Sequence record: LT960552.1
Length of the DNA: 64,000 nt
Direction: 5' to 3' (one strand)
Made by a program: the position numbers and the translations under genes. Every line of letters begins with the position of its first letter. The first letter of the stretch is position 1. A model generated the notes under the pieces. It saw only the letters and a program-made list of their open reading frames with translations, was not told the origin of the DNA and searched no databases. Below are positions 1 to 64,000 of this stretch, in pieces.

Positions 1-4
1 CTAT

Positions 5-77
5 AGATGGATAGACTTCTGGCAGTAAAGATGTTCAGATGGATAGACGTATAGACCTCCATACATCTAGATGGATA
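5..77. repeat. AGATGGATA(GAC) x3 with exact 32-bp period
   Basis: copies start at 5, 37 and 69; extra TAGAC units in between. Confidence 0.8.
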
Positions 78-286
78 TGTGTCTGGACGTTTAGACGGCT
101 AAACCGATTTTAGTCTCGATTTTCCATTAGTTCCCCTTCCGCGTCTAGAAAGTTCTAGGCAGAATCGAAAGTCGTCTTTTCGTGTTGACAGAGCTATATT
201 ATCAAATGGGGTTAATGATTGCAAGGACTTTTTTCAATAAAAATAAATTTGACATCTGATTATATAATGTAGTACTATAGTATCAA

Positions 287-330
287 TCCAGCGAAATGGA
301 CTAACCCTATAGGGTGCCGAGATCCGCCTA
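287..330 (+). ncRNA. two-hairpin element, copy A
   Basis: TCCA-GCGAAA-TGGA cta ACCC-TATA-GGGT; promoter TTGACA 249 / TACTAT 273. Confidence 0.65.
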
Positions 331-367
331 TTAATATATAAAAGCGAATGAGAATCATTACTAATTA

Positions 368-409
368 TAGTTATATTCCCGCACCCTCTAGGGTATCCGA
401 TTTCTCTCG
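368..409 (-). ncRNA. two-hairpin element, copy B (convergent with A)
   Basis: minus strand CGA-GAGAAA-TCG gat ACCC-TAGA-GGGT; minus promoter TTGTAT (442-447) -17- TATTAT (419-424). Confidence 0.55.
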
Positions 410-658
410 TCTGAAATAATAATATCAAAGTACCGAATAGAATACAAGGATTATTTTTGATTTTTATGAAAATAGTTCAAATCGATTTATACGTATAAAG
501 GAAAGGATTTAAAAGGCGTACAAAAAAGCGGGGTGAATGTATAGCAGTACTATAGAAACGCCGTGTAATGGTTCCTATGCATTGTGGTGATATGAATACG
601 CATATAAAGGAAAGAAACTTATATAAGGAAAGTATTTGCAATGAATGAAAGAAAGTAC

Positions 659-686
659 TTGCAAAGGTTTAAGGTTATGATACTAT
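659..686 (+). promoter_or_regulatory. sigma70 early promoter
   Basis: TTGCAA-16-TACTAT with A-rich upstream tract. Confidence 0.6.
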
Positions 687-706
687 CTATTTCGCCAACA
701 AGGAAA

Positions 707-719
707 CGCTCTTTAACAA
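707..719 (+). promoter_or_regulatory. boxA antitermination element (NusB/NusE site)
   Basis: CGCTCTTTAACAA matches the rrn/lambdoid boxA consensus, ~20 nt after a promoter. Confidence 0.7.
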
Positions 720-788
720 CTTACCGGATGATTACTTGATAGTGATTCTTTACTTTAGAAATAAAGAAAAAGAAAAACGATAAAGTAC

Positions 789-816
789 TTGACGGTGAGA
801 TTAGAAAGTGTAGAAT
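789..816 (+). promoter_or_regulatory. sigma70 early promoter
   Basis: TTGACG-16-TAGAAT. Confidence 0.65.
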
Positions 817-822
817 GTTGGT

Positions 823-960
823 TATCGAAAGGCGGTCAGGTTCGCCGTATGATAGGTAAGGGTAACAGGGCAGAATACAGTACTGTTACAGAGTAGCCAG
901 AAGTGCTACTACAGCCTTATAAAAAGCTAACTAACAGTTAGTGACCTATTTACCGCCTAA
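823..960 (+). ncRNA. candidate structured cloverleaf-like RNA
   Basis: nested helices 830-836/952-958 and 852-857/944-949; hairpins 839-846 (UUCG), 862-889, 892-910, 927-941; no ORF. Confidence 0.5.
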
Positions 961-1082
961 CGATATAACGAAAAAAGTTTCTAAGAAGTTGAAAAAAGTA
1001 CTTGACTGATAGAAGCAAAACATAGTACGATGTATCCAAGCCAAACGGCTAATATAACCTAAACTTTTAAGAGGAATTACAA

Positions 1083-1736
1083 ATGACTACTACTAACACT
1101 GCAAAAGTATCTCGTGTAACTTTGAACTCAATCATTTTCGCCACTGCTCCAGTACTGGCTGATGCTGTAGAAGGTGAAACTCACAGTAAAGAAGTACTGG
1201 CACAACACAAAACGGCCTTAGCTGAATTTGTATCAAATCAGGGTAAAGAGTTGGCTGGTTTTATTTTGGGTAAAGTTGAAACGCCTGATTTGATTATCGC
1301 GATTATCAAAGAAGCGGCGAAACAAATTCCAGCAGTACAAAAGCAACTGGCAGATGAAGCGGCAGTAATTGCACTTCAAGCAGAAGAACAGCGTGTTAAA
1401 GATGCTGAAGCGGCTGAATTGAAGCGGAAACAGGATGAAGCAGCATTGCAAGCTGAAAAAGACAAAATGCTTAAATTGTTAACTGACGGCGGTTTAGATT
1501 TGGCAATTGCTCAAACAATGGTAGCGGCTGGCCTTAAAGCAAAAGCTCCAGCTAATTCACCAAAAAACAGTTATGAGCGTGTCGCGGTAACCGTTGACGG
1601 TAAAGGCTACGATGTTCCAGTGCGGGGCAACATGAGCGAAGAATTGAAAGCACTGGTAGCTAAAGATGGCGGGGATCGTGATGCATTTATCGCAAAATAC
1701 CGCAACGAACCAGCCGCACAAGAAGTTACTGAATAA
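1083..1736 (+). CDS. early protein: coiled coil plus possible H-NS-like C-terminal DNA-binding domain
   Basis: strong RBS GAGGA; Ala/Glu/Lys heptad region; C-terminus resembles the H-NS DBD pattern. Confidence 0.85.
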   Translation: MTTTNTAKVSRVTLNSIIFATAPVLADAVEGETHSKEVLAQHKTALAEFVSNQGKELAGFILGKVETPDLIIAIIKEAAKQIPAVQKQLADEAAVIALQAEEQRVKDAEAAELKRKQDEAALQAEKDKMLKLLTDGGLDLAIAQTMVAAGLKAKAPANSPKNSYERVAVTVDGKGYDVPVRGNMSEELKALVAKDGGDRDAFIAKYRNEPAAQEVTE

Positions 1737-1756
1737 TATCTCAGTACTGTAATAAT

Positions 1757-1776
1757 AGGGGGCAAACTAGCCCCCT
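1757..1776 (+). terminator. hairpin terminator
   Basis: TAGGGGGC-aaacta-GCCCCCTA after the stop codon. Confidence 0.6.
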
Positions 1777-1884
1777 AAGCCGTTCTAATAGTATTTTAAT
1801 ACTAACGTGTTATAGTACTATTAGAAACGCTTAAAAGTCTTTATAGAGCGTTTTATCTTATATCTTAAGTAAGGATAAACGCTT

Positions 1885-2154
1885 ATGCAATTAACCCCAA
1901 TATCTAATTTAATTGATAAAAATACTCGCATCGCTAAAACGATGACAGCCATTAGCAGAACAACATCGGTTTTTAATGGTTATCTTGCTTTTGTTGTTAA
2001 TGGTGAATTAGTACAACGTAGGATCTATGACATGGCATATAATAGTTTATATGATTCGTGTATGTATATAGTTCACAAGAAAGTTAATTATGCCGTTAAT
2101 CTTCCCTGTAAGCCTATTAGCGGAGCGTTTAACGCTGAATCACTAAAGGCATAA
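1885..2154 (+). CDS. hypothetical protein
   Basis: ORF with AAGGA RBS, followed by a terminator. Confidence 0.7.
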   Translation: MQLTPISNLIDKNTRIAKTMTAISRTTSVFNGYLAFVVNGELVQRRIYDMAYNSLYDSCMYIVHKKVNYAVNLPCKPISGAFNAESLKA

Positions 2155-2213
2155 GGTAGCATAAAAAGCCCGTTAGAATAGCTCTGATGGGCTTTTTTAT
2201 TTGTTGAAAGTAC

Positions 2214-2241
2214 TTGTATTATAATCTCAGTACTGTATAAT
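2214..2241 (+). promoter_or_regulatory. early promoter, paired-AGTACT family
   Basis: agtacTTGTAT-16-TATAAT; near-identical copies at ~2738 and ~3176, and an inverted copy at 2665-2693. Confidence 0.8.
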
Positions 2242-2272
2242 TCTCTATATCGAAACAACGGGAGTAAATGAA

Positions 2273-2497
2273 ATGAGATTAAGTGAACTGTTAGCGAAGT
2301 TGGAAGCGGTTGCAGTACTGGCAAAAGAATACGGAAACGCTGATCCTGATATTTCTTTTTGGCATGATGAAGTTGAAACCATTGAACATTTAGAAGTTGC
2401 TTTCCCACAAGAATTGGATGATGCAATAATTCCTGTCCAAGTACAATCAAATCGTGAGCGGGGAAACTTTTCATTTCGATTAGTATTACCAGAATAA
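2273..2497 (+). CDS. hypothetical protein
   Basis: ORF, GGGAG RBS, own promoter. Confidence 0.8.
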   Translation: MRLSELLAKLEAVAVLAKEYGNADPDISFWHDEVETIEHLEVAFPQELDDAIIPVQVQSNRERGNFSFRLVLPE

Positions 2498-2506
2498 TCT
2501 TTATAA

Positions 2507-2542
2507 AAGGGGTTGACAATCGTTAACCCTTTATAGTACTAT
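2507..2542 (+). promoter_or_regulatory. fused terminator/promoter cassette
   Basis: hairpin AAGGGGTTGAC-aatc-GTTAACCCTTT contains -35 TTGACA; -10 TACTAT follows. Confidence 0.75.
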
Positions 2543-2550
2543 AATATCAA

Positions 2551-2594
2551 TCCAGAGAAATGGACTAACCCTATAGGGTGCCGAGATCCATCTA
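2551..2594 (+). ncRNA. two-hairpin element, copy C
   Basis: TCCA-GAGAAA-TGGA cta ACCC-TATA-GGGT. Confidence 0.65.
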
Positions 2595-2613
2595 TAGAAA
2601 ATTTAGTACTTAA

Positions 2614-2659
2614 TAGATATAGTTCCGCACCCTCTAGGGTATCCAATTTCTCTTGTATA
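2614..2659 (-). ncRNA. two-hairpin element, copy D (convergent with C)
   Basis: minus CAA-GAGAAA-TTG gat ACCC-TAGA-GGGT; minus promoter TTGTAA (2688-2693) -17- TACAAT (2665-2670). Confidence 0.6.
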
Positions 2660-2798
2660 TAAGTATTGTACAGTACTGAGATTATAATTACAAGGGGTAA
2701 ACAGAAATAAAAATAAAAATTAAAACGAAAAAAGAACTTGTATTATAATCTCAGTACTGTACAATTCTCTATATCGAAACCAGTTAAGGATTAAAGAA

Positions 2799-3185
2799 AT
2801 GGAACGTAACGAGCAATTTAGATTAGTTCTGGAAGTGTTACAAGGTATGGAATCATGTATTGATTCAAATAAAACTTATACATTTATAAATGGTAAATCA
2901 TTTAACTTAAATCAATCGGCTGGTATATGTTGGCATGTTTTAGTACACACACCGAATAGTGAATATTCTGGTATAGGTATGGAATACCTTTCCCCGTTGT
3001 TTAAAAGTATGGGATTGGATTTACATTATCCGGTAGAAATGCAAATAACGAATGATCGAGATGATGCTCGTTGGATTCATTCAATTTCTAAAAATCAATA
3101 TAACCCAATCGGGCAAGAGGGTAAATTGCGTATTAAGTTATTAAAAGATTTGATTAAGTACTACAAAAAAGAACTTGCATTATAA
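2799..3185 (+). CDS. hypothetical protein
   Basis: ORF, AAGGA RBS, own promoter. Confidence 0.8.
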   Translation: MERNEQFRLVLEVLQGMESCIDSNKTYTFINGKSFNLNQSAGICWHVLVHTPNSEYSGIGMEYLSPLFKSMGLDLHYPVEMQITNDRDDARWIHSISKNQYNPIGQEGKLRIKLLKDLIKYYKKELAL

Positions 3186-3230
3186 TCTCAGTACTGTATA
3201 ATTCTCTATATCGAAAACGGGAGAAATGAT

Positions 3231-3686
3231 ATGAATTCAAAACAGTTCCAAGATGCAACAAGAGAAACATTTTTAAAGTACTTTCCTCATGGTCACATAA
3301 GCATTTCTATGTTGGCAATAGGTGGTGGTTGTAATATCTTTTGTGGCTTGATTGGAGACATTAATGATGTAGGTGGTAAGATCCGCATGAATGATCCTGT
3401 AACGGTACGGGCTTATATTCATGATAACTTTTCATTTAATGATGAAAGTACTGAATTGGAAAACGTTGTTATTGAGTTTGATGGTTCGTGGATCTCAGTA
3501 CTACCAGACAATCCGCATCATTATTGTCAATCCCACAAGGTGCCAAGTCGCAAGATTAACGCAGAACCTAAAAAGGCATTAAGTAATTTGGATAAGTACT
3601 TTAAACGATTAAAGGACAGTGTAACAGAGCAAGCAGGATTAAATCGCATTATTCAGCAGGATAAGATCCCCGCGAAATATCTTTAA
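3231..3686 (+). CDS. hypothetical protein
   Basis: ORF, GGGAG RBS, own promoter. Confidence 0.8.
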   Translation: MNSKQFQDATRETFLKYFPHGHISISMLAIGGGCNIFCGLIGDINDVGGKIRMNDPVTVRAYIHDNFSFNDESTELENVVIEFDGSWISVLPDNPHHYCQSHKVPSRKINAEPKKALSNLDKYFKRLKDSVTEQAGLNRIIQQDKIPAKYL

Positions 3687-3744
3687 TTATAACTGTACAT
3701 ATTAACAGTACTTTCTATATTAACTTTTAAATGAGAATATAAAA

Positions 3745-4077
3745 ATGAAATTAAATTCCAAAAACATGATTGTAAAAGCATTTGAATTAAAAACATCAGA
3801 AGATGTTGCATTATTCAAAAAGTCATCTTTTGATATTGGTGATATACTTTACAAGTATGAAGATACTGTATTAGTATTTTATGTCGTAGATAATTTTATA
3901 TATTGTTTTGATGAATCAGAGCCAGAAACTGACATACTCAAAAGCAGTACTAACATGGGTGATATTTTGGTATCATACGGTATTGAGTTGGAATATTTCA
4001 AACAAGATTTTGGCGGTAAAGGTTTGTATCTTGCTGATTTTTGTATTAATGAAGATATATTAGTAGATTTACTATAA
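3745..4077 (+). CDS. hypothetical protein
   Basis: ORF in tandem array. Confidence 0.75.
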   Translation: MKLNSKNMIVKAFELKTSEDVALFKKSSFDIGDILYKYEDTVLVFYVVDNFIYCFDESEPETDILKSSTNMGDILVSYGIELEYFKQDFGGKGLYLADFCINEDILVDLL

Positions 4078-4152
4078 TATATTGTCAAAAGTACTTGCAT
4101 TGTATAAGCGAGTACTTTACAATAAGTTATCGTTAATTGAGAGGATTCGAAT

Positions 4153-4563
4153 ATGTTACATGTTAAAGGTTTTTCTGAGGGTGGTTATTGCTTTATGATT
4201 GGTGATAAGCCTGTTTCTGTTGTTGAAGCATTGCAGAAAAATGGTAAGAAATTTAACAAGAATACATTAAACGCTTTAAATAGAAATAATCTTGCTAATG
4301 AAAGCGATCTTGTGTCATTTGAGTTACAAGTACAATCATTACATAAAGGATTAACACCTGAATATGTAATTCAAATTTTACGCAATGAATATAATATTGA
4401 TTTTAATAATGATTTTCATGAGTTAAGTTCTGCCAGCGTACTGGATTTATTAACAGTATATCATATTGCACAATATCGAGCACCCTCACCATGTAATCGT
4501 GATGGTTCGCCAATGCGTTATTTTTACCAGTACTTAAAACGCTTCATAGAAAAGAAAAAATAA
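4153..4563 (+). CDS. hypothetical protein
   Basis: ORF, GAGGA RBS, own promoter TTGCAT-17-TACAAT. Confidence 0.8.
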   Translation: MLHVKGFSEGGYCFMIGDKPVSVVEALQKNGKKFNKNTLNALNRNNLANESDLVSFELQVQSLHKGLTPEYVIQILRNEYNIDFNNDFHELSSASVLDLLTVYHIAQYRAPSPCNRDGSPMRYFYQYLKRFIEKKK

Positions 4564-4569
4564 TCAAAT

Positions 4570-4605
4570 AAGGGGTTGACTTCGGTTAACCCTTTTTGCT
4601 ATACT
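4570..4605 (+). promoter_or_regulatory. fused terminator/promoter cassette
   Basis: AGGGGTTGAC-TTCG-GTTAACCC-TTTTT then TGc-TATACT. Confidence 0.8.
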
Positions 4606-4613
4606 AATATTAC

Positions 4614-4657
4614 TCCAGAGAAATGGACTAACCTTATAAGGTGTATAAGTGTACCTA
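4614..4657 (+). ncRNA. two-hairpin element, copy E
   Basis: TCCA-GAGAAA-TGGA cta ACCT-TATA-AGGT (compensatory change in hairpin 2). Confidence 0.65.
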
Positions 4658-4751
4658 TAATAAAATAATTAAAATTCATACAAAAAAGTACTTGTATTTT
4701 CTTTTCAGTACTGTATAATTCTTTATATCGAACACAAACGAGGGTTTTTAA

Positions 4752-5174
4752 ATGAGAACATGTAAAGAGTGTGGGAACAATTGCAACGTATTATCTAATG
4801 GTGTTGTCCATCATTACGATGAGGATGATAAAATTGATTATGATCTAGATGGGGATCATGTTGCAATACCTGAATTATCTGATTCTGAAAACAACATGTT
4901 AAATCCAATTCTTCAAAGTACTTTTAATTTTAATGGTGATGTTCCTTGTATTAACTACGCCGCGAATGGTGGAGGTTATGAAACTTACCAGTACTTCATT
5001 TGTGCTGATGGTGGATGTTTAGGAATTGGAACAGTAATTAATGAGTTTCATAAAGTAAACTTTAATGATCCTGATGATAAACAATGGCACATTGTAGGGG
5101 TTGACGTGAATTATGAAAATACTAATCTGATAGATGATCACACAGGGGATTATATACCAGTAGCATATAGTTAA
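4752..5174 (+). CDS. hypothetical protein (N-terminal CxxC)
   Basis: ORF, GAGGG RBS. Confidence 0.8.
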   Translation: MRTCKECGNNCNVLSNGVVHHYDEDDKIDYDLDGDHVAIPELSDSENNMLNPILQSTFNFNGDVPCINYAANGGGYETYQYFICADGGCLGIGTVINEFHKVNFNDPDDKQWHIVGVDVNYENTNLIDDHTGDYIPVAYS

Positions 5175-6080: not shown

Positions 6081-6146
6081 CATATTAAAAGTACTTGCAT
6101 TATATTAGCGAGTACTTTATAATGAAGTTATCAAGTGAGGTACACA

Positions 6147-6533: not shown

Positions 6534-6658
6534 ATGAAGTAATAATACAGTATTTTGATATACGTGTCAAGGATTAAATTAAAATTAAAACAAAAGAAAG
6601 TACTTGCATTAAGTATGAAGTACTGTATAATCTTTTATATCGAAACGGGAGAATTAAA

Positions 6659-7922: not shown

Positions 7923-8056
7923 GTACTATCACAAAAAGCCTCGCATTGTCGAGGCTTTTTATTATCTGAATAATTAAAATTAAAACGTAAAAAGTACTTG
8001 CATTGCATGAGCGAGTACTTTATAATACTTATATCAACCACACAAGAGGCAACAAA

Positions 8057-8398
8057 ATGAAAACTGAATTCTTCGCGACAAGAACATTGGCACGTAACGC
8101 CGTAGAAGCTCTTAATGGTAAGTTCAAAGATTTTGGTAAAGATGCTCCTACTGGCGAACGTTGGGCGGTGCTGGTGGATGAAGTACTAACAGTGCAAGAA
8201 CCAGAAGTTAAAAGTACTAACGAATTGCATTTTGATTTCGTTAATACATTAGCTGATGATGCAGCTAAAGCATTAAATCAGCCTACTGGTATTCGTGGAG
8301 AGCAAACATTAACAACTCCTAACAAGAAGCCTGTACGTGTCTTGTGGCGGCGTTCAATGGTAGCAGTACGTTTGTCTGCACTTCTCTCTAAAGTGTAA
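8057..8398 (+). CDS. hypothetical phage protein
   Basis: start refined to ATG after GAGG. Confidence 0.8.
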   Translation: MKTEFFATRTLARNAVEALNGKFKDFGKDAPTGERWAVLVDEVLTVQEPEVKSTNELHFDFVNTLADDAAKALNQPTGIRGEQTLTTPNKKPVRVLWRRSMVAVRLSALLSKV

Positions 8399-8447: not shown

Positions 8448-8690
8448 ATGAAGAAATATGTAATTGATAATACACAATTACGCATACATTTCAAGGCACA
8501 AACAAAAGTACTTGATAAGGCTATTCGTATTGTGAAAGATTATAATAATGGAAGTGTTAGAGCTAGACGGTTAGGGTGTGGTTTATTTTCAGTAATAGAT
8601 GTATCACATAACGAACGGATCGTTATTAAAAATAAAACACTTAATTTAATGACTCATGAACAATATAATAAATTCGTCGAACGACGTTGA
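8448..8690 (+). CDS. ParE/RelE-like toxin-fold protein (orphan)
   Basis: pattern KA..v..y..G.v.aRRL..G..S.i.V...ER....LMTHEQYNK recalls prophage 'ParE family toxin-like' proteins. Confidence 0.55.
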   Translation: MKKYVIDNTQLRIHFKAQTKVLDKAIRIVKDYNNGSVRARRLGCGLFSVIDVSHNERIVIKNKTLNLMTHEQYNKFVERR

Positions 8691-11061: not shown

Positions 11062-11144
11062 TAATAAAATAATTAAAATTCAAATGAAAAAAGTACTTGC
11101 AATATAATTTTAGTACTGTATAATGTTTTACATAGAAAGAAAAT

Positions 11145-11378
11145 ATGGAAAAAATTATGTTTACAAAATTAACTGATAAAATCAATCGTGAGTTACTTCG
11201 AAATGGTACACGTATATCGCGTGAAACATCTGATGCTACTATCACTATTGGTTATACTACTGGTGGATATTCAGTATTTGAATTCGATAAAAAGGGGGAA
11301 CTTATTGATCATCATTATTCCTTTCATTTGAATTATGCTTACAATATGTTTAAGCGTCAATGTAAAAAGTACTTGTAA
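11145..11378 (+). CDS. hypothetical protein
   Basis: ORF, own promoter. Confidence 0.7.
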   Translation: MEKIMFTKLTDKINRELLRNGTRISRETSDATITIGYTTGGYSVFEFDKKGELIDHHYSFHLNYAYNMFKRQCKKYL

Positions 11379-11450
11379 TAAGTTATCAGTACTGTATACT
11401 TAGTATATGAATTAGGGAATGTTCCTTAATCGATGGTGGAGGTTTTAATT

Positions 11451-11831: not shown

Positions 11832-11918
11832 AAGTACTTGCAATAAGTATTCAGTACTGTATAATGTATTACATAGGGTAAGCAATACCGCTTACCCATA
11901 TTAAGTGAGAATATTAAA

Positions 11919-12919: not shown

Positions 12920-13012
12920 ATTCAAAAAGTACTTGCAATAAGTATTCAGTACTGTATAATATTTTACATAGACACTAGATAACCTCGTGTTAAAGTAAAA
13001 GGAATAACGATC

Positions 13013-13814: not shown

Positions 13815-13897
13815 AAATTCAAACGAAAAAAGTACTTGACTATATCAGTTGAGTACTTTAAAATAGAATCTTAATCAACGCAATAGGAAACGAAATC

Positions 13898-28863: not shown

Positions 28864-29403
28864 ATGGAAGATAATGAAAAAGCTGCATCTGTTCATTTCA
28901 GTTCAGCTAGTAATACATGGGATACTCCTGATGAATTTTATCAGAAGTTAAATGCTGCTTGGAATTTTACATTAGATCCAGCCGCAATGGATGAAACTGC
29001 AAAATGTAACAAGTACTACACTCCTGAAACTGATGGATTATCACATTCATGGAATGGTGAAACTGTATGGTGTAATCCTCCATATGGTAGAGAAATTAAA
29101 AATTGGTATAAGAAATTTGATGAAGAATTTAAGCAAAATGGTACTACTATTGTAGCACTACCACCAGCAAGAACTGACACTATCTATTTTCATAAGTATG
29201 TTAAAGATTCAGCTACTGCTATTTGTTTTGTTAAAGGTCGTTTGAAATTTGATAACAGAAATCTTCCATTATGGACAGAGGAAGGTTCTCATAAAAAGAA
29301 TGGTGCACCTTTTCCTAGTATGATTGTAATATATGATAATGATTTAACAAATGAAAAAATTAAAGTACTACAAGAACTAGGTTTAGTAGTACGTCCTTGG
29401 TAA
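28864..29403 (+). CDS. phage DNA N6-adenine methyltransferase
   Basis: WDTPDEFY..L...FTLDPAA, WCNPPYG catalytic motif, LPPARTDT. Confidence 0.9.
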   Translation: MEDNEKAASVHFSSASNTWDTPDEFYQKLNAAWNFTLDPAAMDETAKCNKYYTPETDGLSHSWNGETVWCNPPYGREIKNWYKKFDEEFKQNGTTIVALPPARTDTIYFHKYVKDSATAICFVKGRLKFDNRNLPLWTEEGSHKKNGAPFPSMIVIYDNDLTNEKIKVLQELGLVVRPW

Positions 29404-32854: not shown

Positions 32855-33586
32855 ATGGTAGATCGTATTAAATTTGCAACTGAAATGGCGAACGAATTGA
32901 ACATGGCTAATTTTCAGTCTTTAACATCCGTAATGGCAGAATACGCAACTGCTGGTGCGGTCGATGGTGTTCAATGTGGTCAAGCTAATATGTTAGCTGA
33001 TGTATACAGTACTTTAAATAGTACTCAATATTCAGTAAAAACATATAAAGATGATTTTGTTTCGTTATATATGAACGGTGTAGTTCAAGATGAACGTAGA
33101 TATACTGATCCAATTATTGAACGTAGAGTAGCAGGTGTATCAGATCCTAACGGTGATCCGGTTATTGTACTTCAAGAAGTACTTCAAGATATTCGTGATA
33201 ATGAAAATAAAAGTAAAAGTCATTATGGTGTTAATAACACTGAAACGATTTTACTAGGATATAGTGAAGATGAACAGTTTTATTACTTTAGATTATCTGA
33301 AATGCCTTATGTGTATGAACAACCTGTTATAGTAGATGTGAAGTATTTCACGGATCGTAGCAAGAACTTTAATAAACATGATGGTAACCGTACATCAATT
33401 GTTGGTTTTAATGAGGATGGTATTCAAATTTATGAATGGGTACATCCTAATAATCAAACATACACGAGATGTTTGAAGAAACGTTATTGTTTAGAAGATG
33501 CTGATTCATTCTATTTCAAAATAGAAAAACAATCATATTCACGTCCTGATAATTCAGTACTCATGGGTATGGTTCATATTTGTTAA
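32855..33586 (+). CDS. hypothetical protein
   Basis: GGAG RBS; terminator follows. Confidence 0.8.
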   Translation: MVDRIKFATEMANELNMANFQSLTSVMAEYATAGAVDGVQCGQANMLADVYSTLNSTQYSVKTYKDDFVSLYMNGVVQDERRYTDPIIERRVAGVSDPNGDPVIVLQEVLQDIRDNENKSKSHYGVNNTETILLGYSEDEQFYYFRLSEMPYVYEQPVIVDVKYFTDRSKNFNKHDGNRTSIVGFNEDGIQIYEWVHPNNQTYTRCLKKRYCLEDADSFYFKIEKQSYSRPDNSVLMGMVHIC

Positions 33587-40047: not shown

Positions 40048-40080
40048 GTCTTTGACTCAGTTTTAATTAAGGAAACTTAT

Positions 40081-40332
40081 ATGGCAATTTTTATTGTATT
40101 ATATTTGGTTGGATTTATTTCAACTATTATGTATTATATTATGTATAAAATTAAATGTGTTGAAAATGGTTCAGTTTCATTTGGTGATATTATTTTTTGT
40201 TTTATATTATCATCATTTGGGTGGATGTTAGTACCACTAATTGTATGTGCTGAAATTATTGAGAACAATTATGGTTCAAGAATTAATAAATTTTTCAGTA
40301 CTCCATTATTTAAAGCTAAAGGTGATTTGTGA
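40081..40332 (+). CDS. membrane protein
   Basis: two TM segments. Confidence 0.7.
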   Translation: MAIFIVLYLVGFISTIMYYIMYKIKCVENGSVSFGDIIFCFILSSFGWMLVPLIVCAEIIENNYGSRINKFFSTPLFKAKGDL

Positions 40333-41108: not shown

Positions 41109-41590
41109 TGCGTTTATATAGTATTACAAATATGTACACTGATGGTATTCATGCAGGTATACAAACACAACATAGTACTGTTCGTTTATTCGTGAAGTAT
41201 GATAAATCTCGTGGGGATTCTTTCCCACAAGAAGATATGTTATATGAATGGGCATACAATCATGAAACTACTGTAGTACTTAATGGTGGTATGCATGATT
41301 CACTTAAATCAGTACTTACAATTTTGGAAGAATGGGAACGACATAATGTAAATGAAGTACTTCCATTTGCACCGTTTTGGGAACCAGGTATTAACAATGC
41401 ATTGACTAGTATTTGTATTATTATGCCACAAGATGCTATTGATTTTATGTCTGAAATTCGTGCAAAGAAACCACGTAATGATATTATGACTCCTGAATAT
41501 ACAGAGTTATATCATAATATTCGAGTAGCATATGGAAATCATGCTTTCAAGTTATTTGAAACAGTTGCATTCTTACCACTAGCAAAATAA
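41108..41590 (+). CDS. possible peptidyl-tRNA hydrolase 2-like protein
   Basis: GIQ..H, W...HETTVVLNGG, F.EPGINNALTSI pattern. Confidence 0.45.
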   Translation: MRLYSITNMYTDGIHAGIQTQHSTVRLFVKYDKSRGDSFPQEDMLYEWAYNHETTVVLNGGMHDSLKSVLTILEEWERHNVNEVLPFAPFWEPGINNALTSICIIMPQDAIDFMSEIRAKKPRNDIMTPEYTELYHNIRVAYGNHAFKLFETVAFLPLAK

Positions 41591-41599
41591 GGTAAATTT

Positions 41600-42835
41600 A
41601 TGAGTACTAAAATCCCTGAGAAGTTTTATGTTTCACGTGTATACCGTAGTACAGAAGAAATTCTAGGTTTCATGGTAGTTGCTGATAATGAAAGTACTAA
41701 GACATTTCAAAAAGCCAAAGAACGTGCTGATAGTTGGACACATAATTCTTCTAATCCATTGTCCCCACTTTATGTTGATAACACTCCACGTTCTGGTTTC
41801 CGTTTAGTTACAAATGTAAGTCGTTATAGTACTTCCAATGTGGTATGGCGTATTATGCACCCTGAAGGTTTTGAATTTGAAATCACTTCTGATAACATGT
41901 GTGATTTGTTGGAAACGAATACTATTGTTGAAGGTGAATTCCAAGATGAATTATTCTTTACACATAATCGTAAATTAGTAAATCAAAAAACAAAACTATT
42001 TGCTGAAATGATTCGTCAAGAAGAAAAGAAAAAAGAAACTATTGAAAAAGTTAAAGAATTAGAACCTGGATGTATTATTGCTGTACCTAATCAGTACAGT
42101 TATCGTAATCCACCACCTCCACCTGATAAGTATGTGTACTGTGGTAAGTTCCATTCTATTAATGTTAATAGTAATAACCCGATGGTTCTTGGAGCAAAGA
42201 GTTCTTTGCGTTATGTAGTTCGTGAAGTAAGTACTGGTAACTATTATTGCCTATCTAAAATTTCTAGTGAATTTACTGCGTTGAATATACATGAAGATAT
42301 TGACCGTGAAAAGGTTATACGAGAATTCAATGAGCAAATTCGTAGTGATAAGGTACATGTTGTACGTTATTATCAAACTGGATATGTGCAAAATGCAGTT
42401 GACCCAGTTCTTATTAATGAAAAACCATTTACTAAAGATAAATTAAAAATGGAATTCATTAAACAACCTATGAAAGATATTTCAGTAATTGATGATACAA
42501 AAATCTATGTTTATAATGAACAACGAGTTTTTGGATTCGGACTTATGAATAATGGTGGTCAATTGTATGTTAACACAGATAAAAATGCGTACAGTAATCA
42601 TAGCATGGTAGCTTCTAAACTATTAGTATATCCAATTTCATCTATTGATGAATGTAATGTTCCTCAAATTAATGTTGATTTGTCTAAACATAAAGGAATT
42701 GATAATTATAATTCTAGTAGTTCTGCATTCGGAACACGAGATCGATATGGTCGTGTTGGTAATAATAAACCAGAACTACGTCACGTTGATATTCCAGAAA
42801 AAATTGAAGTTGGGTATTACACACTAGGGGAATAA
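41600..42835 (+). CDS. hypothetical protein
   Basis: long ORF. Confidence 0.8.
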   Translation: MSTKIPEKFYVSRVYRSTEEILGFMVVADNESTKTFQKAKERADSWTHNSSNPLSPLYVDNTPRSGFRLVTNVSRYSTSNVVWRIMHPEGFEFEITSDNMCDLLETNTIVEGEFQDELFFTHNRKLVNQKTKLFAEMIRQEEKKKETIEKVKELEPGCIIAVPNQYSYRNPPPPPDKYVYCGKFHSINVNSNNPMVLGAKSSLRYVVREVSTGNYYCLSKISSEFTALNIHEDIDREKVIREFNEQIRSDKVHVVRYYQTGYVQNAVDPVLINEKPFTKDKLKMEFIKQPMKDISVIDDTKIYVYNEQRVFGFGLMNNGGQLYVNTDKNAYSNHSMVASKLLVYPISSIDECNVPQINVDLSKHKGIDNYNSSSSAFGTRDRYGRVGNNKPELRHVDIPEKIEVGYYTLGE

Positions 42836-42860
42836 TATTCCCCTGTTATAAGGAGATAAC

Positions 42861-44276
42861 ATGTCAGTACTTGATATTATTTTAAAAATTAAAGAAACTG
42901 CTAGTACTAATGCTAAAAAGGATATTCTTAAAGAGAATATTGATAATGAAGATTTAAAAAGAGTAATTAAACTTGCTTTAGAACCTTCAATTGTCAGTGG
43001 TATTAAAAAAATACCTGAACCAATTAGTACTGACAAAAGTATTACTCTTTCTGAAGCACTAACATCATTAGATAAACTTTATAATCGTACAGTAACGGGT
43101 AATGCTGCTCGACAATTTCTTGGTGAACTTTTGGGTTCAGTAACTGATTGTGATGCTGATATTATTCGTCGAGTAGTACTAAAGAATTTAGATTGTGGAA
43201 TACAAGAAAAAAATGCTAATGATGTATTTGGAAAACAGTTTATCAAAGATGAACCTTATATGCGTTGTTCATTGGTTGATGAGAAAACTGTAAAAAATAT
43301 CACATCATTTAAAACGCATGGCTATGCAGTTGTTGAAACAAAGATGGATGGTCAATATCTTAACAGTACTGTAGTAAATGATTCACTACTTTGTACATCA
43401 CGTAATGGTAAGATTTATGATTTTCTTGGTATGAAAGATGATGATATGCTTCGTTTAGCTAATAATGTTCAAGAATTAGATTCACGATTTAGTTCTGGTG
43501 TAGTATTCAATGGTGAATGCTTAATCATGGGTGATGATGGTAACGTAGTTAATCGGGAAACTGGTAATGGTATTATTCAAAAAGCTGGTAAAGATACTAT
43601 GTCTGATTCAGAAGCAATGCGTGTAGTATTTGTATTGTGGGATATTATACCGTATGATGCATTCTGTGATGGTATATGGGAAGTTGAAAGAAAAGAACGT
43701 CGTGAAATATTAGAACAAGCAATTAGTACTTTAGAATCTGAATTTGTTAGTCTAGTACAATATCGTAAAGTAAAAGATATTGGAGAAGCATTTGATTTCA
43801 ATACTGAAATGATTGATTCTGGTGAAGAAGGTTCAGTACTTAAATGTGAAAGTGGTATTTGGAAATCTCATACATCACCAAAGCAATTGAAAATGAAATT
43901 GAAGATGCAATTTGATTTGCGTATTGTTGGTTTCACTGAAGGTGAAGGTAAGCGTAAGGGGATGGTAGGTGCTATTTTGCTTGAATCTGAAGATGGCATT
44001 ATCACTGTAGGTTGTGGTACTGGTATTAAGGAAAAAGATCATGAATGGACATTCCAAACAATTTGGGATAAACGGGATGAACTTATGGGTAAAATTGTTA
44101 TGGTTGAAAGTAATTCATTGACCAAAGAAAAACGTACTGGTAAAATGAGTATCTTCTTACCATCATTCCAAGAATTCCGTTTTGATAAAGATGTAGCTGA
44201 TATATATGAACGTATTCTTGAAATTCGGGAATCCGCAGTTCATGTTCTTCGTGAAAAGTTGGCACGGTTAGAATGA
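42861..44276 (+). CDS. lig: ATP-dependent DNA ligase (T4 gp30-like)
   Basis: ETKMDG (KxDG), NGEC, WD, EG..LK, KMK, OB-fold FLP.F..FR.DK. Confidence 0.93.
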   Translation: MSVLDIILKIKETASTNAKKDILKENIDNEDLKRVIKLALEPSIVSGIKKIPEPISTDKSITLSEALTSLDKLYNRTVTGNAARQFLGELLGSVTDCDADIIRRVVLKNLDCGIQEKNANDVFGKQFIKDEPYMRCSLVDEKTVKNITSFKTHGYAVVETKMDGQYLNSTVVNDSLLCTSRNGKIYDFLGMKDDDMLRLANNVQELDSRFSSGVVFNGECLIMGDDGNVVNRETGNGIIQKAGKDTMSDSEAMRVVFVLWDIIPYDAFCDGIWEVERKERREILEQAISTLESEFVSLVQYRKVKDIGEAFDFNTEMIDSGEEGSVLKCESGIWKSHTSPKQLKMKLKMQFDLRIVGFTEGEGKRKGMVGAILLESEDGIITVGCGTGIKEKDHEWTFQTIWDKRDELMGKIVMVESNSLTKEKRTGKMSIFLPSFQEFRFDKDVADIYERILEIRESAVHVLREKLARLE

Positions 44277-44650
44277 TAATTTATACTAAAAGTTCTTTTA
44301 TGGAGCCTAAACAGGTTCTATATTTTGTACCATATTTGGACAAACATAGTTCATGGAACGGAATTATTGATTTTAAATTAATTCTCCAAAGCGAATTTAT
44401 TTCAATTATTGATGTGGATACAAATGAAAATTATATTATAAAAAATCGATACGAACGTATTGACAATACTTGGAATTCTGGTACACTATTATCATTAATG
44501 CGAGATGAGATTCAAATTGGTTCTGAAACTGAAGGGACTCGACATTCCTACAGTACTAAATTTAGATACAGTCCAAAATTGAATATTTCATCTTGTGAAA
44601 ACTTTGAAGAATATATAAAGGCTCTATATGAAATTCACAGAAATTTCTGA
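44273..44650 (+). CDS. hypothetical protein
   Basis: coupled ORF. Confidence 0.65.
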   Translation: MIIYTKSSFMEPKQVLYFVPYLDKHSSWNGIIDFKLILQSEFISIIDVDTNENYIIKNRYERIDNTWNSGTLLSLMRDEIQIGSETEGTRHSYSTKFRYSPKLNISSCENFEEYIKALYEIHRNF

Positions 44651-45431
44651 TATTCATGGTGAAATTGATTTCATAAAAGATATACCAGATCAAAAAGATA
44701 CAATTCTTCTTATCCCTGGTGATATACATGAAGTAAAAACATTTTCAGCTTATAGAACAATAATTGAAATACTTGTTAACAAGTATAAAGAAGTTGTTAT
44801 GGTTCCTGGAAATCATGAATATTATAAAAGTAATGTAACAAAAGTACATCGCAAATTAAAAGAACTTGATGATGAGTTCAGTACTTTTCATTTCTTGCAA
44901 GATGATTTTAGAATTTTCGAAGAAGGTGATGAAAAGGTTCTAGTACTTGGTGGAACATTATGGACTGACTTTGAAAATGGAAATCCCTTGACAAAGTTGA
45001 TGGCAAAGAGTATGATGAATGATTACCGATACATTAGGCATGGAACACCAGAATATTATTGGGGTCGTAAATTGATTCCTGATGATGTTGAATTTTTTCA
45101 TTACAAAACTAAAAATTTTATTAAAAAATGTATTGACGAACATCGTGTTTTGTGCGATAATATAAAAACAATTGTAATGACGCATCATGCTCCATCATAT
45201 CAAAGCGTTTCTGCACAATACCAAGATAGTAGTGCAAATGCATTTTATTGTTCAAATATGGATTATTATATTGGAGATATAAATCCAAATATATGGATTC
45301 ATGGACATACTCATACTTCCCATGATTATATGATTGGGGATACTCGTATTATTTGTAATCCAAGAGGATATGGTACTGGAAATGCTTATGAGAATAAAAA
45401 ATTTAACAGTACTCTAACGTTTGAGGTATAA
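44628..45431 (+). CDS. metallophosphoesterase
   Basis: SDIH, GD, GNHEYY, TLWTDF, THH.P, HGHTH. Confidence 0.9.
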   Translation: MKFTEISDIHGEIDFIKDIPDQKDTILLIPGDIHEVKTFSAYRTIIEILVNKYKEVVMVPGNHEYYKSNVTKVHRKLKELDDEFSTFHFLQDDFRIFEEGDEKVLVLGGTLWTDFENGNPLTKLMAKSMMNDYRYIRHGTPEYYWGRKLIPDDVEFFHYKTKNFIKKCIDEHRVLCDNIKTIVMTHHAPSYQSVSAQYQDSSANAFYCSNMDYYIGDINPNIWIHGHTHTSHDYMIGDTRIICNPRGYGTGNAYENKKFNSTLTFEV

Positions 45432-57819: not shown

Positions 57820-58728
57820 ATGATAGGTTATGAAGAAATTGAATTCGGAACACGTTCAAATCGATTTGACTGTGTTTTTGTATGGATATATGCACGTAAC
57901 TGTACACCATATGCTGGTTATCCATATAATGATATTCCTAATGTAAGTTTAGTACTTACTGAATTACGATGGGATGGGTTATTTGGTGCAGTTGGTGGTG
58001 CAGTAGAAGATGATGATTTAAATTTAGAAGTTGCTATCCATCGTGAATCAATGGAAGAAATTGCGTATGATTTACCGATTGAACGACTGGAACCGTTGGC
58101 AACATATAAAAATACGATAAGTGGTTCTCATATTCATAGTTATTCATTGGAAGTAACTTATGAAGAACTATTAGAAATTCGTAAGAATGCATATGATGGT
58201 GTACATTTTAATCCTGAAAATGCAGGTATTAACTTACTACATATTTGCCGATATTTAAAATCTGGTAAAATTGAATGTGGTTGGAATACAGTACTTGAAC
58301 AAAATTTTGTCAGTACTTCTAAACTAGAATTAATGAAATTAGTTCGTACTAAAAATTTACTTATTGATTATGTAGATGATAGTGCTGGAACTAAAGGTTC
58401 ATATAAGATGTTTATTGATGATATACGTGATGTTAATATGTATTATCCATATGATGAATTTGTGGTAGTACGTTCATATAAAGATGCAGTTCAATATGTA
58501 ACTGAACATGGACTACCATCATTTGTATCATTTGATCATGATTTGGGCGATACTGAAAGTGAAAATGAAGAAACAGGATATACATTTGCTAAGTACTTAG
58601 TAGAGTATATGATGGATAATCAAATTGCAGTCCCTTTTGAATATCATGTTCATAGTGCTAATCCAGTAGGGGCAATGAATATCATGTCCTACTTGGAAAA
58701 TGCATTTAAATTTATTCGGAGTTTATAA
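57820..58728 (+). CDS. fusion: NUDT16-like Nudix hydrolase + cyclic-phosphate-processing receiver domain
   Basis: LRWDGLFGAVGG.V......AIHRESMEEI; C-terminal FIDDIRD..VRSY..SFDHDLG..TGY..HSANPVG. Confidence 0.7.
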   Translation: MIGYEEIEFGTRSNRFDCVFVWIYARNCTPYAGYPYNDIPNVSLVLTELRWDGLFGAVGGAVEDDDLNLEVAIHRESMEEIAYDLPIERLEPLATYKNTISGSHIHSYSLEVTYEELLEIRKNAYDGVHFNPENAGINLLHICRYLKSGKIECGWNTVLEQNFVSTSKLELMKLVRTKNLLIDYVDDSAGTKGSYKMFIDDIRDVNMYYPYDEFVVVRSYKDAVQYVTEHGLPSFVSFDHDLGDTESENEETGYTFAKYLVEYMMDNQIAVPFEYHVHSANPVGAMNIMSYLENAFKFIRSL

Positions 58729-61039: not shown

Positions 61040-61099
61040 ATGAAACAGCTTTAAAAATTATGGTATAATCTAAACATAACTACAATGAAGGAAATAAAA

Positions 61100-61357
61100 A
61101 TGGCTAAGCAAGATGATAAAGCACTAAAATCTACACGTAAAGATCGTCTATATAAAAATGAGCAGCTAGACGCTCTATTAGACCTTCGTCGTAAAGGTGT
61201 TCTCACCCGTCAGCAGTTCCGTTTACAGACCTTTGATAAGGGTCTACAGGGCAGCACTAAGGGTTCTCCAATGTATAACGCATTTGAACTAGAAAAAGTG
61301 AATGGTAGTAAAAAAGCGATTCTAGTTGAGAAAACTAAGCAGTGGGTACGTATCTAA
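61100..61357 (+). CDS. small basic protein
   Basis: AAGGA RBS; TGgTATAAT promoter; start refined. Confidence 0.75.
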   Translation: MAKQDDKALKSTRKDRLYKNEQLDALLDLRRKGVLTRQQFRLQTFDKGLQGSTKGSPMYNAFELEKVNGSKKAILVEKTKQWVRI

Positions 61358-61485
61358 TTTCTGGCCTGTTTTGATATAAACAACATAAATAAGTTTACAA
61401 TAATAAAAATATTTTTGACTCCATGTTGTTTATATTACATTCTTTAAGGCCAACGTAAGTTGGCCTTTTTTATTGGAAAAATAAA

Positions 61486-62205
61486 ATGATTAATGAAAAC
61501 AACGAACAAATAGATGTTGAATTAGAGAATCATAATATGATAGAAGAAATTTATACATATTTCTCTAATATCGGAACTCCTGATGTAATAATCTATGGTT
61601 CATTTATTGAAAAAACATGTGGGTTTGATGTTATTCCAAATGATATTGATATATCAGTAATTATTAAAGATGAATTGCCTGAAAATCATTATAGTACTTT
61701 TTTCTTAAATTCTTCTAAATTACCAATAAATGTTGAATACTTAAGTATGGAATCATTTAAACAAGAACTTAATTCATTCCAGCCAAAGTATTTTTTATGT
61801 ACAGCAACTCCAGAATTAAGTGAACTGATAGATTCAGTTTGGAAAAATAAAGAATTGCATGAGATTCGTGCTGGTATCAGTTCTATAACTTCTAAAGCAT
61901 TTGATAAAGGCCGAAAAAAACTGTTAGTTCATGAAGATTATGATGAAGTACTAGGTCTTAAAAATTTATATCATGCATTTAAATTTCCGTTATATGCAAA
62001 ATGGTATTACTATCCTGAACTTGCATGTGAATGCTACTTAGATGATATCGAGTATTTGAATGATATTCATAAAAACATTTATGAAATTTATAAAAATAGC
62101 AATGGAACACTTGATGAGCGGTGTGATATTGTAGTATCATATGCTAAACCACTTTATAATAAGTTGTTAACAGACTTCCGTAAATTATTTCCTAAAAAGG
62201 TATAG
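61486..62205 (+). CDS. predicted nucleotidyltransferase
   Basis: YGS....PNDIDI; K.LYH..K.P. Confidence 0.7.
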   Translation: MINENNEQIDVELENHNMIEEIYTYFSNIGTPDVIIYGSFIEKTCGFDVIPNDIDISVIIKDELPENHYSTFFLNSSKLPINVEYLSMESFKQELNSFQPKYFLCTATPELSELIDSVWKNKELHEIRAGISSITSKAFDKGRKKLLVHEDYDEVLGLKNLYHAFKFPLYAKWYYYPELACECYLDDIEYLNDIHKNIYEIYKNSNGTLDERCDIVVSYAKPLYNKLLTDFRKLFPKKV

Positions 62206-62209
62206 CATA

Positions 62210-62425
62210 ATGACAATATTTGTAATTCTTGGAATGTTATTGCTGTTTTTATTTGGTTTGGCAGCGACTATTGGAAGTATAGTTTTGATATTCTTCTCAT
62301 CAATGTTTGGTGGTAAAGTTAGTACTGGTGAATTATTATTTGGTATATTTTGGATCTGCGTTGGTTCATATTGTTTGTACTATGTATTTTCAAATATAAA
62401 TTTTAGTATTAATATAACGGGATGA
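62210..62425 (+). CDS. membrane protein
   Basis: two TM segments. Confidence 0.7.
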   Translation: MTIFVILGMLLLFLFGLAATIGSIVLIFFSSMFGGKVSTGELLFGIFWICVGSYCLYYVFSNINFSINITG

Positions 62426-62429
62426 TAAA

Positions 62430-62564
62430 ATGGGCGAATTGATTTTTGCATTAGTAGAATGCTTAATTGAAATATTGTGTATGGGTGCATCAGTTCGTTG
62501 GTTTTTTGGATTACTATTATTATCTATAGCTATTTGTGTTGGTTATTATACCTATATTATGTAA
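62430..62564 (+). CDS. small membrane protein (44 aa)
   Basis: hydrophobic ORF in operon; missed by the track. Confidence 0.55.
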   Translation: MGELIFALVECLIEILCMGASVRWFFGLLLLSIAICVGYYTYIM

Positions 62565-62642
62565 GGATTAAAAAATGAAACTATTTACAAAAGGACGCAT
62601 GTCATTTCGATTATGAATTTTAAATCATAATAAGGAGGACAT

Positions 62643-63185
62643 ATGTTCTTTAATCAGAAATTTAAAATCTTCTATGATAACGGAAATGTAGTTGAAGTAG
62701 ATGATTTGTTAGAATACATTGGTAATGCATATGGTGCTGCTGAAAAATTCTACTTACGTATGAAGTTTACTATAAAAGTTGATAAATCAAGTTTTTGGAG
62801 TTCTTCATACTTTAACGAAAATTGGCATGTAACAGATTTGTTCTTATACACTGAAAACAATATCATGATTTCTCCTGAGTTGTTTAAAGGTGAATATTTA
62901 AAACATCGTACCGATTATATGAATATATGGTACAGAAATCGTAAGTATTCCATGATGCAATGGAGGCATTTTCATTTCAAACGTGGTCATACATCAACGT
63001 ATGAACGTAAAATGGAAACGATAGCTGAACGTAGGGCAATTGCTGGTGTAGTAAAAGAAGAAGGTGAACCAGAGTTTCGTGGTCGCCGCCGTTGTATCCC
63101 ACATCCGTGGGATGACATAATGGCTCGTCGCAGTCTTTCTTGGAAAGATTGTACTAAAAGAAAACGTCAACATAAAGGAAGCTAA
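62643..63185 (+). CDS. hypothetical phage protein
   Basis: AGGAGG RBS; basic C-terminus with PWDD..SWK. Confidence 0.8.
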   Translation: MFFNQKFKIFYDNGNVVEVDDLLEYIGNAYGAAEKFYLRMKFTIKVDKSSFWSSSYFNENWHVTDLFLYTENNIMISPELFKGEYLKHRTDYMNIWYRNRKYSMMQWRHFHFKRGHTSTYERKMETIAERRAIAGVVKEEGEPEFRGRRRCIPHPWDDIMARRSLSWKDCTKRKRQHKGS

Positions 63186-63213
63186 TGCTTCCTTTTTTCA
63201 TAGAAGATATATA

Positions 63214-64000
63214 ATGAATTCAGATGAACTACTACTAGCTCGTAGACTTTTAAACAATTTAACTATTGAAAATAGAAATTTTATTGTAACTCGTGACATA
63301 TCACACGATATCCCTTCTTATGAAGATTGTAGATATCCATCACATTTAATTAGTTGGCTACATTTAAATAATTTATTAGTACTGTTAAGTAGCTACCCAA
63401 TTGATGATGATGAACGTTATTTTATTGAAATTTTTAAAATTACTGAATTGGGTAGTACTATTACATGGTTTACTGAATTACTTGAACAATACAATAAAGG
63501 AATGGATGGGGAACACGAATTTAGATATGCAGGAAAATTATTGTATACTATATTACATAACTTCAATGAACTAGAAGTAGACCCTGTTATTCAATTAATA
63601 ACTGATGAAGAAAAAGAAGCATATCAACATTTTTACCGTACCCAAGTTTGGGATTCGACCGTTAAAGAAACAAAGACTTATACACGTGAAGAAGCATTAC
63701 AAACAATTGAATTTAATAAAGGTTTACTTTCTATGTTTGAAATGTCAGTAATTTTAGGTGCACGTGGTACAGATCCTACCCGTACAAATAATTATGTTTT
63801 CAAAAAATGTATGGAAGAATTGGGTGAAATGGCAGTTGAAGATCAAATTGAAAATGGTCTTTCATATAAAGATGCTGGCAGTGATGGTGTTGCTGGTGAA
63901 GCTGTAGATCTTGCAATTTGTGCAATGGATATGTTTGCCTTGCAGTATGGACATTTAAATCCAGAAGAAATTCAAGAGAAGTTTATCACTTATATGAATA
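63214..64000 (+). CDS. partial gene with C-terminal MazG-like NTP pyrophosphohydrolase motif
   Basis: open to the window end; in-frame KCMEELGE...GEAVDLAICAMD. Confidence 0.7.
   Translation, partial: MNSDELLLARRLLNNLTIENRNFIVTRDISHDIPSYEDCRYPSHLISWLHLNNLLVLLSSYPIDDDERYFIEIFKITELGSTITWFTELLEQYNKGMDGEHEFRYAGKLLYTILHNFNELEVDPVIQLITDEEKEAYQHFYRTQVWDSTVKETKTYTREEALQTIEFNKGLLSMFEMSVILGARGTDPTRTNNYVFKKCMEELGEMAVEDQIENGLSYKDAGSDGVAGEAVDLAICAMDMFALQYGHLNPEEIQEKFITYMN

Follow-up and report, generated by a model that had tools for sequence, protein, structure and literature searches.

AGTACT, a highly over-represented palindrome and possible self-mark in enterobacterial RaK2-like jumbo phages

The first 64,000 bases of the genome of Yersinia phage fHe-Yen9-03 (LT960552.1; bases 1-64000, hereafter the window; GC content 31.7%) contain 268 copies of the palindrome AGTACT against 21.3 expected, which makes it the commonest of all 4096 hexamers. 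fHe-Yen9-03 is a RaK2-like jumbo myovirus of the genus Eneladusvirus with a genome of 352,596 bp, and the word has been followed here through the whole genome and its relatives. The excess is maintained by selection, is confined to one clade of phages, is built into a two-site architecture at early promoters, and is replaced by other versions of the word in metagenomic lineages. Our best explanation, to which we give roughly even weight, is that AGTACT is a selected self-mark, read by a putative dimeric factor that also controls the early promoters. Highly iterated words, such as HIP1, the uptake signal sequences and DNA uptake sequences (USS/DUS) and Chi, offer a rare view of proteins that act as readers of a whole genome. 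Phages would be expected to lose palindromes and, to our knowledge, no highly iterated word has been described so far for any phage. Among the papers that name these phages, none contains AGTACT and none connects GCGC, a second word considered below, with them.

Extent of the excess

The whole LT960552.1 genome was put together from loci, and its first 64 kb are identical to the window. It carries 1012 AGTACT sites, where Markov models of order 0, 1, 2 and 3 predict 118, 87, 170 and 402, respectively, and AGTACT is the top outlier at each of these orders. Within the window (1..64000), the sites amount to 4.2 per kb, rising to about 6.5 per kb in the first 20 kb (1-20 kb), the early region, where they are densest. 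A sequence-only reading of the window had counted by eye about 32 sites in 1-5000 and about 21 in 40001-45000; these figures proved exact on recount, against 1.67 and 1.63 expected from local composition. The same reading had seen the excess inside open reading frames and in different frames, and both observations extend to the genome: 909 of the 1012 sites (90%) lie within coding sequence, at a density of 2.8 per kb (4.1 per kb in non-coding DNA), and all three frames are used (AGT-ACT, 471; nAG-TAC-Tnn, 114; nnA-GTA-CTn, 328).

Shuffling of synonymous codons within genes yielded 211 +/- 13 sites versus 913 in the real sequence (z = 53) and, together with the Markov models, rules out an artefact of codon usage or of Markov composition. 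The excess therefore has the properties of a HIP1-type word, in that it is several-fold, genome-wide, present in all frames and beyond what codon usage and composition provide. The check that had been proposed, a Markov-corrected k-mer and frame analysis, leaves the excess in this genome in place, and the disappearance that had been named as refuting it did not occur. The complete hexamer carries the signal, because its 18 one-mismatch neighbours occur near expectation and are not depleted; GTAC outside AGTACT is without comparable enrichment.

Selection on the word

The word has distorted the proteins themselves. Ser-Thr is spelled AGT-ACT in 471 of 786 dipeptides (60%), where codon usage predicts 119 (15%), and the usage of Ser-Thr and Val-Leu has shifted to 1.54 and 1.30 times expectation, whereas the reversed dipeptides stand at 1.0. 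Selection that bends codon and amino-acid usage across 350 kb implies that an important DNA-reading activity should exist. The preference also extends beyond the hexamer: in five enriched genomes, C is favoured 1.7- to 3.1-fold at position -1 and G is disfavoured (0.36-0.47 times expectation), the flanks are symmetric, and the C/G preference is graded among isolated phages from 3.1-fold in RaK2 down to 1.7-fold in BF. As the flanks are symmetric, the word appears to be read on double-stranded DNA. There is no strand or orientation bias of the kind found in Chi, USS or the FtsK-orienting polar sequences (KOPS): word and flanks are palindromic, and AGTACT is equally dense on both strands, with 2.4-3.2 sites per kb in core, clade-specific and orphan genes.

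Individual sites are held more firmly than other hexamers. Position conservation is 57-63% for AGTACT against 34% for other hexamers in comparison with BF, and 39-41% against 20% in comparison with GAP32; where the amino acid is conserved, the ACT codon is kept in 79% of cases inside the motif and in 64% elsewhere. Between fHe-Yen9-03 and its sister fHe-Yen9-04 (1% divergence), 27 of 972 AGTACT sites differ where 42 differences are expected, and with BF as outgroup these comprise about 15 clear losses and up to 21 likely gains, which are roughly balanced. Just 14-17% of sites share their position with RaK2, although each genome has about 1000. The slower loss, together with this low sharing at equal totals, points to weak purifying selection per site with turnover at a maintained density.

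A functionless mutational or repair bias that makes AGTACT, such as very-short-patch (VSP) repair or biased gene conversion, is very unlikely to be the cause. It would agree with the gains between the two Yersinia phages, which are at least as frequent as neutral expectation, but sites are lost clearly more slowly than the genome average, the excess reaches amino-acid changes, and the promoter architecture described below is kept in five genera. VSP-type repair is ruled out by the undepleted one-mismatch neighbours. Methylation-biased repair of the VSP or HIP1 type, which had been suggested as a driver, finds no support here, nor in the avoidance of AGTACT by phages that carry the closest outside homologues of the candidate methylase (see below).

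Distribution among phages

With TCATGA as the control word, an AGTACT excess was found in all enterobacterial RaK2-like phages tested, which have 850-1313 AGTACT and 135-200 TCATGA sites: fHe-Yen9-04 (1008 and 137, respectively), the Serratia phage BF (1072 and 152), GAP32 (1011 and 169), CBB (1235 and 187), XbC2 (1105 and 186), Munch (850 and 149), PBECO4 (891 and 135), RaK2 (937 and 142) and Hallingskeid (1313 and 200). The outgroups, five more distant jumbo phages, have 0-81 AGTACT sites and no excess: Vibrio phage 2.275.O (81 and 98), RsoM2USA (62 and 176), PA5oct (15 and 40), Atu_ph07 (25 and 82) and XacN1 (0 and 127). Escherichia coli K-12 has 400 AGTACT and 1147 TCATGA sites, so that the density of AGTACT in fHe-Yen9-03 (2.9 per kb) is 33-fold that in E. 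coli K-12 (0.09 per kb). Furthermore, about 27 other 6-bp palindromes are reduced to 0-2 copies in the AGTACT-enriched phages, and as these have evidently been purged under strong avoidance pressure, AGTACT stands out as a deliberate exception. The earlier proposal of a functional genome-wide mark is supported, with the word behaving as a mark at the DNA level: its flanks are symmetric, its density is uniform across strands and gene classes, it is under purifying selection with turnover, and it is restricted to a single clade in which other 6-bp palindromes are purged.

The excess is limited to phages of enterobacterial hosts and is missing from relatives on Vibrio, Ralstonia, Pseudomonas, Agrobacterium and Xanthomonas citri; this, and the under-use of AGTACT by the E. 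coli genome itself, would suit a reader that is a host (Enterobacterales) protein recruited or titrated by the phage. We consider this explanation unlikely. We know of no enterobacterial factor for which AGTACT is the determinant, and the SlmA site, which contains AGTACT flanked by G and C, has the flank that is disfavoured in the phages. In addition, the word differs in metagenomic relatives (see below), consistent with a reader evolving alongside its phage.

Early promoters and the non-coding region

In all five genomes, the distances between neighbouring AGTACT sites peak sharply at 20-21 bp, with a lesser maximum at 10-11 bp; helical phasing was not seen beyond these peaks, where only the 3-bp coding periodicity remains. 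The window has 11 pairs of sites 20-21 bp apart, all with one layout: an A-tract is followed by AGTACT, the last T of which is the first T of the -35 element (for example TTGCAT, TTGTAT or TTGACT), and after 14-15 bp by a second AGTACT and then GTATAAT or TTATAAT. Several pairs coincide with -35/-10 signals annotated in the record. One of these is the early promoter at 2209..2241 (+ strand, as are all those that follow; sites 20 bp apart), in which the first AGTACT is fused to the -35 element (AGTAC-TTGTAT) and the second to the extended -10 element (AGTAC-TGTATAAT). From their sequence, early promoters with sites 20 bp apart are also recognized at 4687..4719, 6599..6631, 11092..11124, 11833..11865 and 12928..12960, together with a promoter-like pair at 11368..11400, and those with sites 21 bp apart at 4090..4123, 6090..6123, 7993..8026 and 13831..13864. 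Such pairs account for fewer than 10% of AGTACT sites, and their fixed position relative to -35 and -10 was confirmed.

Ahead of the early genes lies a non-coding control region (1..1082, + strand), which continues from 351.6-352.6 kb of the genome and contains several sigma-70-like promoters of the form A-tract plus AGTACTTGAC. Over the 1.8 kb of non-coding DNA across the genome ends there are further single AGTACTTGAC promoters and a 20-bp tandem array in which each unit starts with AGTACT (genome 351854-351929, 5 sites), just upstream of window base 1. A matching array is present in fHe-Yen9-04 (353537-353712, 10 sites) and a similar one in RaK2 (224747-224802). The array might serve for nucleation or as an element resembling an origin.

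Two palindromic sites on the same face of the DNA that overlap both sigma-70 contact regions look like the classic layout for a dimeric regulator. We propose the following. AGTACT, with C before and G after preferred, is selected at the level of double-stranded DNA and would be read symmetrically by a sequence-specific factor, probably a dimer. Each of the approximately 1000 copies would confer a small, density-dependent benefit by marking phage DNA. At the early promoters, where two copies two helical turns apart overlap the upstream edge of -35 and the extended -10, the same factor would gate the host RNA polymerase, most likely shutting off or sequestering these promoters.

The word could instead act in RNA, as AGUACU, for example as the target of a phage RNase, and the 2.5 times higher density in the early region could be read in this way. 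However, word and flanks are palindromic, copies lie inside promoters upstream of the inferred transcription starts, and density is equal in genes of both orientations, which makes a signal at the RNA level extremely unlikely.

The methylase g056

The sequence-only reading had named an N6-adenine methylase gene at 28864 as a candidate partner of the word. This is g056 (28864..29403, + strand), which by family match encodes a 179-amino-acid N6-adenine DNA methyltransferase of the phage Dam family PF05869. In methylase family searches of four enriched genomes (fHe-Yen9-03, RaK2, GAP32 and PBECO4), no methylase other than g056 was shared by all four, and the outgroups lack it; a C5 methylase is missing in fHe-Yen9-03, and one of the N6/N4 type is missing in RaK2 and PBECO4. 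A solitary adenine methylase, the PF05869 gene, is thus conserved in the enriched genomes searched, and as far as this goes the suggested partnership stands. A methylase alone, however, does not drive the excess. The closest g056 homologues outside the clade are 40-53% identical, nearer than the RaK2 orthologue, and belong to phages of Staphylococcus, Lactococcus, Acinetobacter and Bacillus that avoid AGTACT. Nor is g056 sufficient for the excess: one metagenomic lineage has a syntenic orthologue (53% identity) but no excess of AGTACT.

These results bear on the main rival, a possible epigenetic explanation that we hold to be rather doubtful, namely a private system like that of Dam and GATC, in which g056 methylates the adenine of the GTAC core and the state of the dense sites, hemimethylated or fully methylated, is read to time early promoters, organize replicated DNA or guide strand-directed repair; the protein g063, described below, might then play the part of MutH or DpnI, as a nuclease or reader guided by methylation. 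Its attractions are that g056 is the sole methylase shared by the enriched genomes searched, that g056 and g063 are syntenic in three lineages (with a gap of only 5 bp in one), that each version of the word retains GTAC and hence the adenine, that the structural neighbours of g063 include MutH and DpnI, and that sites lie inside the -35/-10 regions, as in known Dam-controlled promoters. The density of one site per 350 bp also resembles that of GATC in E. coli. The avoidance of AGTACT by the phages with the closest outside homologues and the syntenic orthologue in a lineage without the excess speak against it, as do the lack of comparable enrichment of GTAC beyond AGTACT and the lack of any match to the SeqA and MutH families (PF03925 and PF02976) in six genomes, MutH figuring only as a remote structural neighbour of g063.

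The restriction-endonuclease-fold protein g063 and the absence of GCGC

Among the clade-specific proteins that have no Pfam family, g063 (32855..33586, + strand; 243 amino acids) is the most conserved. Its homologues in isolated phages are found in the clade only; there are 71 records with identities of 59% or more, each annotated as hypothetical. The AlphaFold model, for which 22 sequences were used, is confident, with a predicted local distance difference test score (pLDDT) of 90.5. A Foldseek search with g063 against the PDB gave no significant match and the fold was seen only by an exhaustive aligner, with which type II restriction endonucleases hold nearly all the top places: ThaI (Z 8.4) is followed by NhoI, HinP1I, MspI, SfiI, NaeI, SwaI, DpnI (Z 5.8), HhaI, MutH (Z 5.0), EcoRV and PvuII. 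Further entries named as restriction endonucleases were retrieved from the AlphaFold database, and the language-model neighbours of g063 are restriction-enzyme families throughout. The predicted structure thus indicates a type II restriction-endonuclease fold (PD-(D/E)XK), and D49, S60-V-K62 and E89, which are invariant, might make up a variant of the PD-(D/E)XK site.

The presence of g063 coincides with the total absence of a different word. GCGC has no copies in any of the five enriched genomes (fHe-Yen9-03, BF, GAP32, PBECO4 and RaK2), where 215-353 are expected, whereas the Vibrio, Ralstonia and Pseudomonas jumbo-phage outgroups have it at normal frequency (561, 557 and 337 copies). It is also absent from the loci of three metagenomic lineages with g063 homologues (6, 33 and 6.4 expected). 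Two of these four GCGC-less g063 lineages are without an AGTACT excess, and the solved folds nearest to g063 include cutters of GC-only 4-bp sites (ThaI, HinP1I, MspI and HhaI). Because g063 presence goes with GCGC absence and its fold is near those of such cutters, g063 is more likely a candidate GCGC-directed nuclease than a reader of AGTACT. On the structural model, it may act on host DNA that bears GCGC, and the phage would be safe from it through having no such site, not through methylation. The lineages share ancestry, and the correlation may represent a single evolutionary event.

The same data bear on the idea that g056 and g063 are a restriction-modification pair for AGTACT, like ScaI or Eco255I, that cuts unmethylated host sites while the phage's own methylated sites pile up secondarily. 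g063 does have the predicted type II endonuclease fold, with the blunt-end cutters ThaI, SwaI, EcoRV, PvuII and NaeI among its neighbours, and it adjoins the adenine methylase in one lineage. This pairing is nonetheless decidedly unlikely: a genome that carries such a system does not as a rule enrich the site it targets, the few AGTACT sites of the host would make it a poor weapon, and g063 tracks the absence of GCGC in four lineages, including the two without the AGTACT excess, which suggests GCGC as the target.

Other versions of the word

A profile search with g063 of 1.8 billion proteins gave a few remote homologues, on metagenomic contigs syntenic with the window; motif counts in these relatives cover loci, of 20 kb and 19 kb in the two lineages that follow. 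In one lineage, at 26% GC, the g063 homologue directly follows a Dam-family gene, only 5 bp away (the two genes are 3.4 kb apart in fHe-Yen9-03), and the word is a strict 8-mer, CAGTACTG, mostly inside TYCAGTACTGRA, with 15 copies in 20 kb against 0.1 expected. In another, at 41% GC (loci L183-L185), both genes are present and AGTACT occurs 5 times against 6 expected; the enriched word is ATCGTAC, often with two further bases and then G, which recurs about 35 times within 19 kb, in every frame and on either strand. The lineages therefore carry different versions of the word around GTAC, a core that all versions share. Such drift of a word and its flanks is expected of a co-evolving protein and its sites, and speaks against both a chemical bias and a host factor that stays the same.

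Candidates for the reader

Of the 567 predicted proteins of fHe-Yen9-03, 59 are present in the five enriched genomes and absent from three non-enriched relatives. g056 and g063 are the leading candidates for the machinery, being the two clade-specific proteins in the window that, by family match and predicted fold, would read DNA sequence. Several points weigh against a dedicated reader that marks phage DNA and gates its promoters. No such reader was found: when 55 of the 59 clade-specific proteins were scanned against Pfam and PHROG, the methylase was the sole DNA-binding match. The upstream copy in the promoters also agrees with the consensus for the proximal subsite of the UP element, and ordinary contact with RNA polymerase may thus account for some of the promoter signal. 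Finally, the reader may be encoded by the host, or the mechanism may be purely epigenetic with no separate binding protein.

A more elaborate proposal, which we offer as a tentative and rather improbable one, is a self/non-self system of two words, with the versions of AGTACT as the positive mark and GCGC as the negative mark. AGTACT, possibly methylated by the clade-specific Dam-family enzyme, would be read by a factor gating the early promoters, and g063 would cut GCGC-containing DNA, be it the host chromosome or competing phages, without need for protective methylation.

Comparison with known iterated words

HIP1 (GCGATCGC) of cyanobacteria is likewise a short palindrome in many-fold genome-wide excess that occurs in coding DNA in all frames, is clade-specific and has a suspected methylase. 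However, AGTACT is found in a virus, is 6 bp long (with versions of 8-12 bp in other lineages) and occupies two fixed positions in early promoters; the phage genome otherwise purges palindromes, and the partner methylase, g056, is a candidate only. USS/DUS resemble AGTACT in having about one copy per kb, in being kept by selection or drive, and in being self-recognition marks read by a protein and divided into lineage dialects, but they are asymmetric and tied to natural transformation, whereas AGTACT is palindromic and in a lytic phage. The enterobacterial system of GATC, Dam, SeqA and MutH offers an orphan adenine methylase, a palindromic site about every 250-350 bp, and sites in promoters and origins that are read by methylation state. 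Unlike AGTACT, GATC reaches this density without enrichment; homologues of SeqA and MutH were not found in the phage, in which AGTACT methylation is hypothetical. ScaI and Eco255I (AGT^ACT) recognize the same hexamer, and the phage has genes for a restriction-fold enzyme and a methylase 3.4 kb apart, but it enriches the site rather than avoiding it and the phyletic pattern suggests GCGC as the target of g063.

Chi (GCTGGTGG) likewise occurs in excess and labels self DNA for an enzyme that processes it, but it is asymmetric and oriented. The E. coli Chi octamer is separately enriched in fHe-Yen9-03, with 13 copies of GCTGGTGG on the + strand and 4 on the - strand against approximately 0.9 expected per strand, and Chi sub-words rank among the most enriched hexamers of the window.

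The selection described here affects dozens of jumbo phages that are studied therapeutically. AGTACT also provides a simple sequence signature with which the clade can be found in metagenomes, and predicts an unusual pattern of digestion by ScaI and HhaI-type enzymes.

Other features of the window and genomes

The gene beside g056, g055, encodes a MORN-repeat-like protein and was rejected as a nuclease. In the region of fHe-Yen9-04 that matches 40-48 kb of the window there is a 1.3-kb insertion with a gene annotated as a type II DNA modification methyltransferase, which is missing in fHe-Yen9-03. Among the clade-specific proteins, an 80-amino-acid early protein (8448-8690, + strand) has a ParE-like toxin domain (PF24732, E 9e-12), and its gene is preceded by that for a basic, likewise clade-specific protein of 131 amino acids (8003-8398); another (57820-58728, + strand) has both a Nudt16-like NUDIX domain and a cyclic-phosphate-processing receiver domain (cREC_REC).

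The hexamers banned across the clade (0-2 copies in each of the five genomes, where at least 20 are expected) include AGGCCT, CAGCTG, CGATCG, CGTACG and CTCGAG, as well as CTGCAG, GAGCTC, GAGCCC, GCATGC and TCCGGA. They correspond to recognition sites of restriction enzymes from enterobacteria, for example Kpn2I, Eco24I and PstI. Avoidance of GATATC, CTTAAG and other words varies by genus.

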